A DNA stretch of 64,000 bases from Hemiscyllium ocellatum. Taxonomy: Eukaryota. Positions 42,500-47,542 of the stretch are shown piece by piece (within the stretch, counting starts at the first letter, position 1; every line of letters starts with the position of its first letter). Under the pieces are notes generated by a model that had not been told where the DNA came from, did not search any database, and worked only from the letters and a program-made list of their open reading frames with translations. The position numbers and the translations under genes were made by a program. The DNA is taken from NCBI RefSeq assembly GCF_020745735.1, contig NC_083409.1:13639259-13703258 (forward strand), written 5' to 3'.

Positions 42500-42618
42500 G
42501 TTGACTCCGTTCTCCTCAATGACATGAACAAGAGACAAGGCAGGAATAAAGAATATCAGGACACCACCAGTGACCTCCTGAAATTCATAAGAAACCTCAC
42601 CCAGCACTTTGATGAAAA
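42500..42618 (+). pseudogene. RNASEL: RNase L KEN/ribonuclease-domain penultimate coding exon, acceptor damaged
   Basis: Translates [39 protein letters not shown], close to RNase L (human ...[21 protein letters not shown]). Preceded by a pyrimidine tract ending ctcg (no AG); followed by phase-2 donor gtagga. Confidence 0.85.
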
Positions 42619-42974
42619 GTAGGAGTATGTGAACAATACTTAGTGACAATATTTTCCTGCTTTTTCAGTTTTTAGCATCGATTCAAAGCAGAAAGAGTCT
42701 TTCTTTCTCCTTCCCTCCTTCAAACTGTTACTGAGATGATCAAACCCAGCCACAGTTCATGTGACGGGCTGAGGGATTATCTAATGGTTGAGAGAGGGGA
42801 CTGGGTCAGGATTCCCTAGAATTCAGAAGGCTGGGATGAGATTTCACTGAAACATTTCAAATTCTCCAGGGCCCTGACAGGGTAGATTTTGAAAGGATGA
42901 ACCCCTACCTGGGGATTCTAAAGCAGAGTCCCAGTCTGGGAATAAGGGGTTACACATTTTGATCAGAGATGAGG

Positions 42975-44150
42975 AATGGGTGGCACAGTGGCTGGCGTCA
43001 CTACCTCACAGCGCCAGGGTCCTGGGTTTGATCCCACCTTCAGACAACTGTCTGTGTTGAATGTGTATGTTCTCCCTGTGTCTGAATGGGTTTCCTCCGG
43101 GTGCCTCATTTTCCTCTCTCAGTCCAGAGATGAGCAGGTTAGTTGGATTGGCCATGGAAGTGTAGGGTTCGGAGAGGGGGCTGGTTCTGGGTGAGATGCT
43201 GCTTGTACTTGATGGGCTGAATGGCCTTCTTCCACACAGTAGGGATTCTATGATTCTACATTGCTGTGGATCTGGAGTCATATGTCAGTCAGGATGGGCA
43301 AGGACAGCAATCTGATGGATATTAGTGGGCCCGATGGGGTTCTCCCCCAACAATGGTCATCATTAGACTCTTAACTCCAGAGTCTTTTTGGATTTAAAAT
43401 TCCACTCCATACATTGCTAGGATTTAGATTAGATTCCCTGCAGTATGTAAACAGGCCCTTCCGTCGAACAAGTCCACCCCGACCCTCCGAAGAGTAACCC
43501 ACCCAGACTCATTCCCCATATTCACCCCTGACTATGGGCAATTTAGCGTGACCAATTCACCTAACCTGCACATCTTTGGACTGTGGGGGAGACCGGAACA
43601 CCCGGAGGAAACCCATGCAGACACAGGGAGAATGTGCAAACTCCATAAAAGGCAGTCACCCGAGGCTAAAGTCGAACCTGGGATTCTGGTGCTATGAGGC
43701 AGCAGTGCTAACCACTGTACCACCATGCTGCCCCAGATCCCAGATCCCAGATCTCCCAGAACCTTACTTGGCTCTTGTGATTAAGAATCTAGTGATGATA
43801 CCATTAATTCATTGCCTCCCCACATGTGTATTATCTCTATCTTGAATTTATTCAAATGCCTAAGTATCGATGAGTATCCCAAAGATTCAAAACCCTCTGA
43901 GTGAAGAAATTCATAGAATCCCTACAATGTGGAAATAGGCCAATCAACCCAAACCGCTTCTCCAAAGAACATCTCACCCAGACCCACTCCCCTTGCATTT
44001 CCCATGACCATTCCACCCAACCCGCATGTTTGTGGACTGTGGGAGGAAACCAGATCACCGGGAGGGAACCCAAGCAGACACATGGAGAACGTGCACAGGG
44101 AGAACAGTCAGTTGCCTGAGGATGGAATTAAACATTGGTCCCAGTGCTGT
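42975..44150. mobile_element. Cluster of HE1-type SINEs (42975-43260 +, 43420-43735 -, 43905-44150 -)
   Basis: Same consensus; lies within the RNASEL intron. Confidence 0.8.
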
Positions 44151-44675
44151 ACCACCCCACTTGATTCTGGGCAAGAAATGCTGACATAGCAAGTGATGCC
44201 CAATTCAGTAAATGAATTAACAAAAGATCAGTTAAGTTCTGGATAGGACTGTGATGGGTTACTCCCCACTTGCCTGGATGGATGCAGCTCCAAAAACAAT
44301 CAAGAAGCTTGATATCTTCCAGTACAAAGCAGCCTGCTTGATTGGCACCACATCGATAAACATCCATTCCCTCCACCACTGATGCTCATTAACAGCCGTG
44401 TGCACCATCTACAAGATGCACTGCGGGAATTCACATCAAGTCTCTTGAGACAGCACCTTCCAAACCCACAATCATTTCCATGTAGAAGGACACAGAACAC
44501 GACCAAAAACAGGTTCCCCTCCAATCCACATAGAATCTTGATTTGAAAATATATTACTGTTCCTCCAGTGTCACTGGATGAAAATCCTGAAATTCCCTCC
44601 CGAAGAGCATTGTGGGTTTATCTACAGCACGTGGACTGCAGTGGTTCAAGAAGGCAGCTCACCACCACCTTGCAA
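44130..44675 (+). mobile_element. Non-CR1 LINE 3' fragment (related pieces ~32430-32830, 38170-38560, 51440-51650 on minus)
   Basis: RTVMGYSPLAWMDAAPKTIKKLDIFQYKAACLIG. Confidence 0.65.
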
Positions 44676-44689
44676 AGGGCAGAATTCTG

Positions 44690-45010
44690 GGTCAGTGGTT
44701 TGTGCTGCTACCTCACAGCACCAGGGACCTGGGTTCAAATCCACGCTGGGACAACTGTCTGCGTGGAGGTTGCACATTTTCACCATGTCTGTGTGGGCTT
44801 CTTCCACACAGTCCATAGATATGTTGGTTAGGTGGATTAGCCATGCTAAATTGCACATAGTGTTGAGGGATGTGTTGGCTGGGTGAGTTGGCCATAGGAA
44901 ATGCTGCAGTACAGGAATGGAGTCAGTCCAGATGGGATGCTGTTTTGTGGGTTGGTGTGGATTTGATGGGCTGAATGACCAACTTCTACACTGTATGATG
45001 ATTCCATGAT
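44690..45010 (+). mobile_element. HE1-type SINE
   Basis: Degenerate consensus. Confidence 0.7.
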
Positions 45011-45089
45011 TCACAAGTACAACACAGAATGTGTAATAAACGCTGGCCCAGATAGCAACACCCATGTCCTCAGAGTGAGTTTTAAACAA

Positions 45090-47090
45090 AAAGACCATCT
45101 GCACTGCTTACTATTCCATCAGTCTTTGTGTCAATGTGGAACTATGATTCTCATTCATACATACAGTAAGTAGTTAAGGCCTCACCACAGAATCCTTGTG
45201 GAACACCACATGTCACTTTCTTTCCCTGTTGTCTGTCACTAAACCCGCCTCCAAACCAAGTCAAACATTCATCTTCAATCCCATGGCTTTTGACTTTGAT
45301 CAGCAGACTGTTTTGTGGGAAATTATCGAGTACTTCTGAACTTGCTGCCCTATCGACTATTTAGTTTATGCGTTTGGTACATTAGTCAGAACCTACCCAT
45401 CACAAATCTATGTGGGCTATTTCCAATTCTCTACATGTTCATTCTCTCGGCGGTTAATTATAGATTCCAATGAAACCCTCAAAAGAGATGTTAGATTGAC
45501 CAAAATGTAATTTCCACAGTTCCCGTTCTCATCTTTCTTGAACCTGTGGAGTTACAGCAGGATATTATCCAAACTAAAGGAGTGGTTGCTGCTTTGGAAC
45601 CTGATGGGAAAAGCCTCTGAAACTTCTCCCCCCTCCCCCTCCCTTTAAATTCCTGAGGTCCTGAAGATCTGTCAGCCTATAGAGCTGCTCGCTTTCCAAT
45701 GCTGTTTTCTGGCATGTATCAAGTTTTGCAAATTCCAGTCTTCAATTGTGGCAGGACCTCCCTGGAATATAAGCTGCATTATGTCATTGGTTGACTTTGA
45801 AGACTGACACAACTAATTATTGTACATATCAGCCATTCCCTTAGGCTCATTCATGGAATTCCCAGTTTGTTTTTAAAGGACTCACATTGCACTGGAGCCC
45901 CTTTGGTTTTCTAATTTTCGAGTAAAACATTTGTATTATTCTTGTGACCCCTTGCAGGTCTCTTTCTCCATCACTTTTCTGTAATTCGCTTCCTTTTTGA
46001 CTTCCTTTGCAGTTCTTCATGTCTTCTTTCAGTTGCCTGAATTTTCACTGATATTCCCACATGTGAGTGTTCTCACCTTTCATTTTCTGTTTTCTCTCAC
46101 TTATTTTGTCAACAATGATGTGTAAACAAGTGGGGATCTGTTCCGTACTGAGCTGAATACATCTTAAACCATCTCCCCATCTCATTGGGAGTCTGATCTG
46201 ACAATTTTGGCTGACACCAATCTCTGTTGCATTCTGTTTTCTGGGAGGTGGGTGTCACTGGCATAGATCAGCATTTGTTACCCAAGACTAATTGCCCTTG
46301 AACTGCTGGCCTTGCTGTGGCCTCCCAGAAGGCACCTTAGAGTTAACCAGATTGCTGTGGGGCTGGAGTCACATGAAGTCCAGACTGGGTAAGGCTGAGG
46401 CTGGACAGCATTCAGGGATCATTATTGTGGTCACCATTAATGAGGATTGCTTTGTGATTTGAATTCAAATTCCAGCACTTGTCACTGGGGAAGATAGTAC
46501 AGTTGGATATATTGTGGCAGGACCTCTGTTTTGTATCTCACCTGAAAGACAACAGCTCCCTCAGTTTTGCAGTGTCAGCCTTGACTGTGTGTTCAACATC
46601 GGAATTAGGAGCGGGAGGAGGCAATTCAGCCCTTCGAGCCCGCTCCGCCATTTAACATGACTGTGGCTGATCTTATCCTGGTCTCAACTCCACTCTCCTG
46701 CCTGCTCCCCATCGCTCTTTATCTCACTTTTCATCAGAAACACATCTTTCTTGAACCTGTTGATTGATTCTGTCTCCAGTGCACTCTGAGGCGTTGAGTT
46801 TCACAGATTCACAACCCTCTGGGAGAAGTAGTTTCTCCTCGTCTCAGTTTTGAACTGACCTCCTCTCACTCCATGTCGATGACCTCTTGTTCCAGACTGT
46901 CCCACAAGGGGAGCATCTATTCAACGTCCTCCTTATCAATCCCCTTTCACATTTTCTATCCCTCAATCAGATCCCTCCTCATTCTTTTGAACTCCAGTGA
47001 GTACAAGCCCAAGCTCTTTAACTGCTCCTCATGGGACAGCACTTTCATCCCTGGGATCAGTCTGGGGAATATCCTCTGAACAGCCTCCAG
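45090..47090 (-). mobile_element. Old CR1 fragments and SINE remnant inside the RNASEL intron
   Basis: CR1 RT-like and 3' tail sequence on minus. Confidence 0.55.
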
Positions 47091-47421
47091 TGCTGAAGGA
47101 CTCGATGATCAAAACAGACTCCCCAAAGCTTCTGAGACGGAGGTGACAGTGCTCCCACTGACCAGGTTCCAGTTTGTACAGGGCCCCGCTCTCAGCTGGA
47201 TGGTTGGGAGTTGGAGCTGATTTTAAGCTGTATATTGGAGAGGAGTAAGCAACCTTTCTGATCAAAGCCTCCAGAAATGTGAAGGTGCAATTTATGAGCA
47301 ATTCAGAGCAATGATCTACTCAGTTATTTTGACTCCTGGGGCCTGCTGAGTACTAAAACTCAGCATTTAGGGATTGCTGAGAAATATCTTCATTGACTTG
47401 GACATTAATTGTACTTTTCAG

Positions 47422-47542
47422 GTTCCACAGTTTAATGAAGAGTCCAGGAGATTATATCTTTGGGTTATTTCCCGATCTCATTGTTGCTGTCTACAAGGCT
47501 GTGAAGGACACAGAGTGGAAAAAGTACTTTCCAAAAGAATAG
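47422..47542 (+). pseudogene. RNASEL: RNase L terminal coding exon
   Basis: Acceptor ttaattgtacttttcag|g. Translates [39 protein letters not shown], matching RNase L ...[27 protein letters not shown]. Phase is compatible with the 42618 donor. Confidence 0.85.

Follow-up and report, generated by a model that had tools for sequence, protein, structure and literature searches.

RNase L is already known as a functional protein in cartilaginous fish (PMC10400998). The immunoglobulin light chains of sharks are encoded in "clusters", that is, V-J-C cassettes, including those of the kappa, or type III, kind. The other system to consider is the class of pseudogene fragments that segmental duplication leaves in low-copy repeats, which keep introns and flanks, break off inside an intron, and carry disabling mutations. 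The sequence examined here is a window of 64,000 nucleotides from the shark Hemiscyllium ocellatum (assembly GCF_020745735.1, contig NC_083409.1, forward-strand positions 13,639,259 to 13,703,258), with positions counted from its first letter. It has a pair of exons resembling the end of RNase L, situated among light-chain cassettes. On the sequence comparisons below, the pair is very probably an unprocessed, truncated RNase L pseudogene that arose by segmental duplication, and not a working gene.

Homology identifies the plus-strand segments at 42500-42624 and 47422-47542 as the last two RNase L coding exons in remnant form, in agreement with the initial annotation, which had placed two RNase L exons on this strand. 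The first of them, exon A, is the remnant of the penultimate coding exon, belongs to the KEN domain, and begins exactly at 42500. The second, exon B, is the remnant of the last coding exon, runs from 47422, and encodes a 39-residue peptide followed by the stop. When the window is searched by tblastn with full-length RNase L of Chiloscyllium punctatum (P0007), exon A aligns to residues 789-831 at 88% identity (E = 5 × 10−18) and exon B to residues 831-869 at 92% identity (E = 9 × 10−18). In a PDB search each exon alone finds only RNase L, as pig 4o1o and human 4oau, with E near 10−3 in each case, and the two sets of matches fall on collinear, adjoining RNase L segments. Exon A scores 26.3 bits against the Pfam family PF06479 (Ribonuc_2-5A), above the gathering cut-off of 23.3, and the two exons cover profile positions 43-78 and 97-125 out of 127. 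The catalytic Tyr, Arg, and His that had been pointed out earlier are indeed kept, with the spacing Tyr-12-Arg-5-His in a stretch of 18 residues. HMMER with exon A alone as the query gives two matches, one to a Mustelus RNase L and one to a croaker protein that has three repeats of the KEN tail.

IRE1/ERN1 also has a KEN domain, and shares with the fragment both the PF06479 family and the nuclease helix motif containing the catalytic Arg and His. An IRE1/ERN identity is rejected, because RNase L chains are the only ones matched and the database relatives of the fragment are all RNase L; no IRE1 chain is matched by either exon in the PDB search with E up to 10. Unlike IRE1, the fragment contains the motifs LLKFIRN and FPDL..VY..TEW, and these together with the high RNase L identity place it with RNase L, so the earlier preference for RNase L over IRE1 is borne out. 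The fragment is homologous by descent to shark RNase L (XP_072429490.1 from Chiloscyllium punctatum and XP_060686052.1 from Hemiscyllium ocellatum). Across the 81 residues that close the KEN domain the proteins are 88-92% identical, and the likeness extends to the gene in its exon boundaries, its intron phase, and the collinearity of the intron and the downstream DNA. The fragment differs from the shark gene in consisting of the last two coding exons only, with an acceptor lost and a premature stop.

The DNA reference for collinearity and for the exon map is a scaffold of Chiloscyllium punctatum, a species of a sister genus; this scaffold, BEZZ01001581.1 or L001 below, bears an intact RNASEL gene. 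By blastn, window positions 41822-53266 are collinear with the intact locus at L001 36712-50766, with the right-hand limit of homology set by the end of the scaffold at 50819, such that at least 7.8 kb of parental downstream DNA is covered. The leftmost block joins 41822-43425 to L001 36712-38370 with 83.8% identity over 1677 columns. According to the parent exon map, the homology begins within an intron, 686 bp 5′ of the penultimate exon (L001 36712-37397), and what the window keeps of that intron is its 3′ 678 bp, at 41822-42499 (+). After exon A comes the last RNASEL intron, retained at 42625-47421 (+) and holding several SINE copies, and after exon B comes a copy of the 3′ UTR and of intergenic DNA downstream, at 47543-53266 (+), collinear with L001 43017-50766. 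Retention of the introns shows that the copying took place at the level of DNA and not by retrotransposition; a processed pseudogene is rejected on account of the 4.8-kb intron homologous to that of the parent. Introns and noncoding flanks have been copied and the truncating breakpoint is defined, as expected for an unprocessed duplicated pseudogene.

To the left, the RNASEL intron gives way to a sequence that we call block X (41514-41825), a flank of the immunoglobulin cassettes, delimited by self-blastn and a four-way alignment. Block X recurs in the cassette unit of the constant exon C3 (31634-31941) and, inverted, in the unit of C1 (15539-15775). The four-way alignment puts the rearrangement junction at 41822-41832, where block X on the left and the RNASEL intron on the right overlap in a short microhomology, CAAT..CAC. 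Upstream of this point, tblastn with two shark RNase L queries (P0002 and P0007) finds, in 42 kb, neither an exon for the ankyrin repeats or the pseudokinase nor an earlier exon of the KEN domain, which agrees with the absence reported before. The same two queries with E up to 50 give no further RNase L exon above noise anywhere in the window, and tblastn together with the parent exon map finds the KEN exon for parent residues 721-765 to be missing from it. A functional RNase L gene has N-terminal ankyrin repeats, which bind 2-5A, a pseudokinase, and a complete KEN ribonuclease domain, and the window does not contain these; its homology to the parent locus begins 3′ of the pseudokinase exons.

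Exon A carries two lesions. Its 3′ splice site is destroyed, with CG at 42498-42499 (+) in place of the parental AG (TCG versus TAG), and within about 30 nt there is no other AG upstream of the exon. The protein and DNA alignments also show an in-frame TAG at 42620-42622 (+), at a conserved Lys codon that is AAA in Chiloscyllium punctatum; among 11 sequences of shark RNase L this position is Lys, with Glu in one species. In the alignment to the parent, exon B retains its acceptor AG and its terminal TAG stop at 47540-47542. With the upstream domains absent, the acceptor lost, and the stop premature, the copy would be unable to encode RNase L. The name "RNase L 3′ end" under which the pair was first listed does not hold, in view of the break in homology at the junction, the lost acceptor, and the stop at the end of the orthologous exon.

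These data bear on whether the exons could be the true end of a live RNASEL gene, whose upstream exons would lie left of the window or be spread among the cassettes. The compatible phase, the good conservation, the retained catalytic Arg and His, and the intact acceptor and stop of exon B are what one would expect of such a gene. Against them stand immunoglobulin-cassette sequence in the place of RNASEL intron from 41822 leftward, the CG acceptor of exon A, and the TAG ahead of the native donor. Moreover, complete shark RNASEL genes span 20.6-38.3 kb, and 42 kb holds no upstream exon. Hemiscyllium ocellatum also has an intact RNase L of 812 aa on record (P0020), known here as a protein record, with Ank, Pkinase, and Ribonuc_2-5A domains, and the fragment differs from it at 7 of 81 residues. 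A live gene is accordingly rejected on the breakpoint, the lost acceptor, the stop, and the missing upstream exons, and we would be very surprised to see it return.

The splice junction first proposed between the exons, 42618^47422, is not the orthologous one. The exon of the intact gene is 6 nt longer, and its donor, GA|GTATGT, is kept in exon A at 42624/42625. The proposed donor, AA|GTAGGA at 42618/42619, is a cryptic one 6 nt 5′ of the orthologous donor, and the TAG falls inside those 6 nt. Hence the frame appears open across 42618^47422 because the cryptic donor skips the stop.

As to selection on the copy, the coding differences from the parent comprise 6 non-synonymous and 3 synonymous changes plus the stop. 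Three functional hemiscylliid RNase L proteins differ among themselves at only 2 of the 81 residues. The NG86 dN/dS value is 0.44, resting on 9 substitutions only. Exon divergence is 4.5% versus 6.0% for the immediate noncoding flanks (p = 0.43). At a larger scale, patches of about 0.5 kb centered on each exon, at 42222-42721 and 47124-47623, diverge by 5-6% from the intact Chiloscyllium punctatum gene, while the rest of the copy diverges by 13.5-14.6%. The patches are thus 2.4-fold less diverged than the remaining copy, as judged with boundaries picked after seeing the data. Such patches could be due to recent gene conversion, or to constraint, past or present.

The patches raise the question of whether the fragment is inert. 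It could be that gene conversion, with either a sister copy or the intact RNASEL gene as partner, keeps the sequence around its exons similar to the live gene, or that the fragment is transcribed and, with the cryptic donor in use, spliced to give a regulatory RNA or a short product of the KEN tail. The contrast in divergence between the patches and the rest of the copy speaks for this, as does the availability in exon A of a cryptic donor that preserves the frame. The post hoc boundaries speak against it, and so do the exons being no better conserved than their flanks, such that no selection at the coding level is visible, and the fragment having no acceptor, promoter, or upstream exon. Conversion tracts are equally compatible with the copy as a passive recipient rather than a donor. 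We consider a role of this sort very improbable. A related proposal is that the RNase L tails borne by cassettes do not drift independently, that the patches are conversion tracts, and that dead copies and the live gene exchange KEN sequence. This has a slightly better chance, and is still a long shot. If it were true, the dead copies would either serve an antiviral gene as a reservoir of variants in its arms race with viruses, or pass disabling mutations to it time and again.

For the truncated pseudogene that we prefer, four observations count on the other side: a dN/dS of less than 1, from those few substitutions; the lower divergence of the exons and their surroundings; the cryptic donor, which would keep the frame open across both exons; and, from Chiloscyllium punctatum, two other kappa cassettes, L002 and L003, that are without an RNase L tail. 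The last of these bears on the question, put earlier, of whether other kappa clusters have the same insert: no RNase L tail lies within 10 kb of the C exons of L002 or L003, and therefore the tail does not accompany every cassette.

The cassette to which the fragment belongs is that of C4, an immunoglobulin kappa-type light-chain constant exon at 56349-56672 on the minus strand, recognized by tblastn and by the Pfam C1-set family at 80.9 bits. The placement of the fragment within a kappa-type cassette, convergent with C4, is as first described. A Hemiscyllium ocellatum protein named "immunoglobulin kappa light chain-like" (P0040) has a C region identical to C4 at 105 of 106 residues, and the C1-set exons in the window are 94-99% identical to hemiscylliid proteins of that name. 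The named kappa chains were retrieved with a longer probe (P0013); the bare C domain in a word-indexed search brought up contaminant fragments only. The C3 exon is broken at its end, and C2 is a fragment. The window resembles a shark light-chain cluster in having repeated cassettes with C1-set exons. It is unlike the V-J-C clusters in that C exons alone are detected, there being no V or J segment in the window by motif patterns, exact RSS patterns, or a V-J-C protein probe.

Self-blastn confirms that the interval holding the RNase L exons is about 11.7 kb in the C4 unit and that its counterparts in the units of C1 and C3 measure only about 3 kb; the extra sequence is specific to the C4 unit, as had been thought. 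On either strand of the interval, the open reading frames derive from SINEs, and none of them matches a Pfam family. The Chiloscyllium punctatum cassette L002 is of the C1/C3 type. A SINE-mediated deletion that would turn a C4-type unit into a C1/C3-type one is rejected, since the C1 and C3 units have a 2.7-kb filler (14620-15539; 33949-31941) with no counterpart either in the C4 interval or at the RNASEL locus.

Inverted cassettes and numerous SINEs make the region highly repetitive, and there is a gap of N at 1520-1707 elsewhere in the window. These features make it reasonable to ask if the interval at 42-53 kb is an assembly artefact in which RNASEL sequence was mis-joined into the cassettes. 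The interval has substitutions of its own, the two exon A lesions, which are absent from the intact gene, and a private SINE insertion in the last intron at about 43424-43742, some 317 extra bases at a place where L001 38370/38371 is contiguous. It is thus not live sequence put in the wrong place, and the microhomology at the junction is typical of genuine rearrangement. We give a mis-join next to no credence.

Returning to the truncated pseudogene, the course of events that the alignments favor would be as follows. A segmental duplication would have copied a stretch that starts inside an RNASEL intron, goes on through the final two coding exons and the 3′ UTR into the intergenic DNA beyond, and extends at least to within about 3 kb of a kappa-type C exon. 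The copy would have been joined at 41822-41832 to the block X of another cassette. The exons for the ankyrin repeats, the pseudokinase, and the first part of KEN would never have been part of it. Loss of the exon A acceptor, gain of the in-frame stop, and acquisition of the SINE would be later events in the copy, which presumably yields no RNase L protein. We infer that the unit of duplication was the light-chain cassette adjoining the live RNASEL gene. The initial annotation had offered two explanations, that a fragment of an antiviral gene was captured into an immunoglobulin cluster, or that the RNASEL locus is interleaved with such clusters. Capture is apt as a description, but as a functional event it is disfavored relative to hitch-hiking of the linked RNASEL gene's tail during cassette duplication. 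Interleaving holds weakly, to the extent that one chromosome apparently carries both the intact Hemiscyllium ocellatum RNase L gene and the kappa clusters, and not beyond that. In four shark species RNASEL and kappa clusters appear to be linked in this way, and a full-text literature search found no paper describing it.

Compared to other unprocessed pseudogene fragments, then, the one in this shark shows no difference in kind; what sets it apart is that the duplicon carrying it is an immunoglobulin light-chain cassette. In an annotation, the label that suits both exons is RNASEL pseudogene fragment; they add no antiviral gene to the count, and they are no evidence for a functional fusion of innate and adaptive immune genes. 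The precise breakpoint and the private lesions provide a marker for the descent of cassettes from the neighbor of RNASEL, and for the order of the duplications that spread kappa clusters along the chromosome. The apparent RNASEL-kappa linkage is a small observation of synteny that comparative immunologists may use.

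The window holds two stretches on the forward strand, exon A (42500-42624) and exon B (47422-47542), which the initial annotation had read as the RNase L 3' end, 2 KEN exons placed inside an immunoglobulin (Ig) kappa cluster. Both are present at these positions. In a search of 177,635 distinct PDB sequences, RNase L is the only match to either one alone, through the pig (4o1o) and human (4oau) structures, both at E of about 1e-3; the matched segments are consecutive and collinear, and relaxing the threshold to E = 10 brings in no IRE1 chain. Exon A scores above the Pfam gathering cut-off for Ribonuc_2-5A (PF06479), and HMMER against 1.84 billion representatives matches this exon to the full-length Mustelus asterias RNase L, through which we reached an RNase L protein set from nine elasmobranchs and two tetrapods, supplemented by the hemiscylliid cluster. 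The closest member is from Chiloscyllium punctatum (869 residues), with residues 789-831 at 88% (E = 5e-18) and residues 831-869 at 92% (E = 9e-18) in tblastn on the window. From the PDB, Pfam, HMMER and tblastn matches, therefore, the exon pair is real, far beyond chance, and the earlier choice of RNase L over IRE1 is correct. The top library match of exon A is a 449-aa teleost hypothetical protein, Larimichthys crocea TMS01848.1, containing three tandem repeats that resemble the last two KEN-domain exons (LLRFIRNL.EHY ... FPDLFGC.YKF).

Read directly, exon B is open as far as its stop codon, and the translation of exon A ends with a stop and then E. Compared base by base with the parent, the intact C. 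punctatum gene, the exon A acceptor is TCG|G versus TAG|G (window 42498), with no substitute AG found for about 30 nt upstream. The parental AAA (Lys) is TAG at 42620-42622, directly before the kept orthologous donor GA|GTATGT, at a position that is Lys or Glu in 11 of 11 shark orthologue sequences (FDEK-K/E-E/D-F/L). Exon B has kept both its acceptor and its stop codon. The junction first proposed, 42618^47422, uses another GT lying 6 nt 5' of the orthologous donor, and because of this the frame had appeared clean and two residues shorter than all orthologues.

Against the parent, 11 of 246 exon sites are changed, compared with 45 of 751 in the adjoining noncoding sequence (p = 0.43). The coding changes are 6 non-synonymous and 3 synonymous, plus the two-base change giving the stop; the NG86 dN/dS of 0.44 rests on 9 substitutions and carries little weight. 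Across three hemiscylliid species, the functional RNase L proteins vary at only 2 of these 81 residues. By these counts the copy shows no sign of coding-level constraint. The initial annotation was correct as an observation and over-read as an interpretation, since exons A and B are not a working gene end.

The earlier report of no further RNase L exons holds, in that two shark queries at permissive thresholds give exons A and B alone in the window; whole shark RNASEL genes occupy 20.6-38.3 kb, versus 42 kb available upstream of exon A. As reference we used the intact C. punctatum RNASEL locus with its flanks (L001, scaffold BEZZ01001581.1), with exons mapped. Window 41822-53266 is collinear with L001 36712-50766, where the end at 53266 is set only by the end of the reference scaffold (L001 50819). 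Homology begins 686 bp 5' of the penultimate coding exon, in an intron. The junction lies at 41822-41832 in a four-way alignment, with block X, the cassette flank sequence of the C3 and C1 units, to the left and RNASEL intron to the right, the two sharing a short CAAT..CAC microhomology. The intron between exons A and B is kept, which rules out a retrocopy and makes this a DNA-level duplicate. An inverted-repeat, hairpin-like element at 53377-53871, with more copies at 391-600, 35001-35061 and 39337-39428, is placed where the reference scaffold ends and C1-unit homology restarts.

The surroundings are repeated light-chain units, some inverted. Their constant exons, C1-set domains, are C1 (11206-11529, + strand), C4 (56349-56672, - strand), C3 (36333-36674, - strand), whose last residues are broken, and a C2 fragment (23435-23520, - strand) of only about 30 C-terminal residues. 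C3 has lost the conserved ...SIRRSECV ending, with SIRVLGTVHRGD in its place, and by sequence both C2 and C3 look like dead C exons. The label "kappa" is reasonable because the C exons are 94-99% identical to hemiscylliid proteins named "immunoglobulin kappa light chain-like" by NCBI. C4 agrees with the C region of one of these, H. ocellatum P0040, at 105 of 106 residues, three private residues included; the P0040 gene model joins C4 to a small exon (about 58805-58879), its V part falling outside the window. Neither a V-J-C probe (protein) nor searches for FGxGT motifs, Cys-Trp-Cys motifs and exact RSS patterns gave a V or J segment upstream of C1 or C4 (1-11200 and 56700-64000). The size difference noted earlier between the C4 and the C1 and C3 intervals is borne out and arises because an 11.4-kb RNASEL-derived segment in the C4 unit replaces the approximately 2.7 kb of unit-specific filler found between C exon and block X in the others. 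The RNase L tail is not in every cassette, as the C1 and C3 units are without it, and none was found within 10 kb of the C exons in two other C. punctatum kappa cassettes (L002 and L003).

A SINE at about 43424-43742 is private to the window copy and missing from the intact RNASEL intron, and was therefore inserted after the duplication. It belongs to a family of about 300 bp with many window copies at 70-87% identity (also 42974-43256, 43911-44150, 44677-45012, 47642-47956, 50065-50365, 52048-52370, 13950-14570 and 62092-62411). Reverse-transcriptase-like LINE fragments lie between cassettes at 40343-40972 (+), 7922-8722 (-) and 27765-28737 (-); the one at 40.0-41.0 kb breaks blocks common to the C1 unit, and its 209-aa ORF (40343-40972) has no Pfam match at E 0.01. 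Positions 1520-1707 are 188 N, an assembly gap or masked stretch.

Most of the copy has diverged from the intact C. punctatum gene by 13.5-14.6%, but around the exons this falls to 5-6%, in two patches of roughly 0.5 kb with an exon at the centre of each (42222-42721 and 47124-47623). The patch limits were picked after viewing the profile, so that p-values of 1e-7 to 1e-10 are optimistic, although the effect is still large. Purifying selection acting only on the parent would halve the divergence at most and should not extend hundreds of bases into introns. The simplest explanation would be gene conversion, either of the live gene with dead copies or among copies, and on the divergence profile the two patches may be its tracts.

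Cartilaginous fish are already known to have a functional RNase L (PMC10400998). The intact H. ocellatum protein, 812 aa long, carries Ank, Pkinase and Ribonuc_2-5A domains, and its gene and the H. ocellatum kappa genes are each on a contig of 116,467,424 bp. In each of H. ocellatum, C. punctatum, Heterodontus francisci and Scyliorhinus torazame, the contigs bearing RNase L and kappa-type light-chain genes are equal in length and hence presumably one chromosome, which suggests a long-standing linkage between RNASEL and kappa clusters. As to origin, a light-chain cassette would have stood tail-to-tail with RNASEL, a putative adjacency, the DNA 3' of the intact gene being covered to 7.8 kb. A duplication unit running from within the RNASEL intron across the neighbouring cassette may then have been joined to block X of a different cassette, and later cassette duplications would have spread the composite.

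We found no publication on RNASEL fragments in shark light-chain clusters or on linkage of RNASEL to such clusters. Partial unprocessed pseudogenes within segmental duplications are commonplace, and exons A and B are a fresh example of that known kind. The fragment is of low general interest, its use lying in annotation and in marking duplication.
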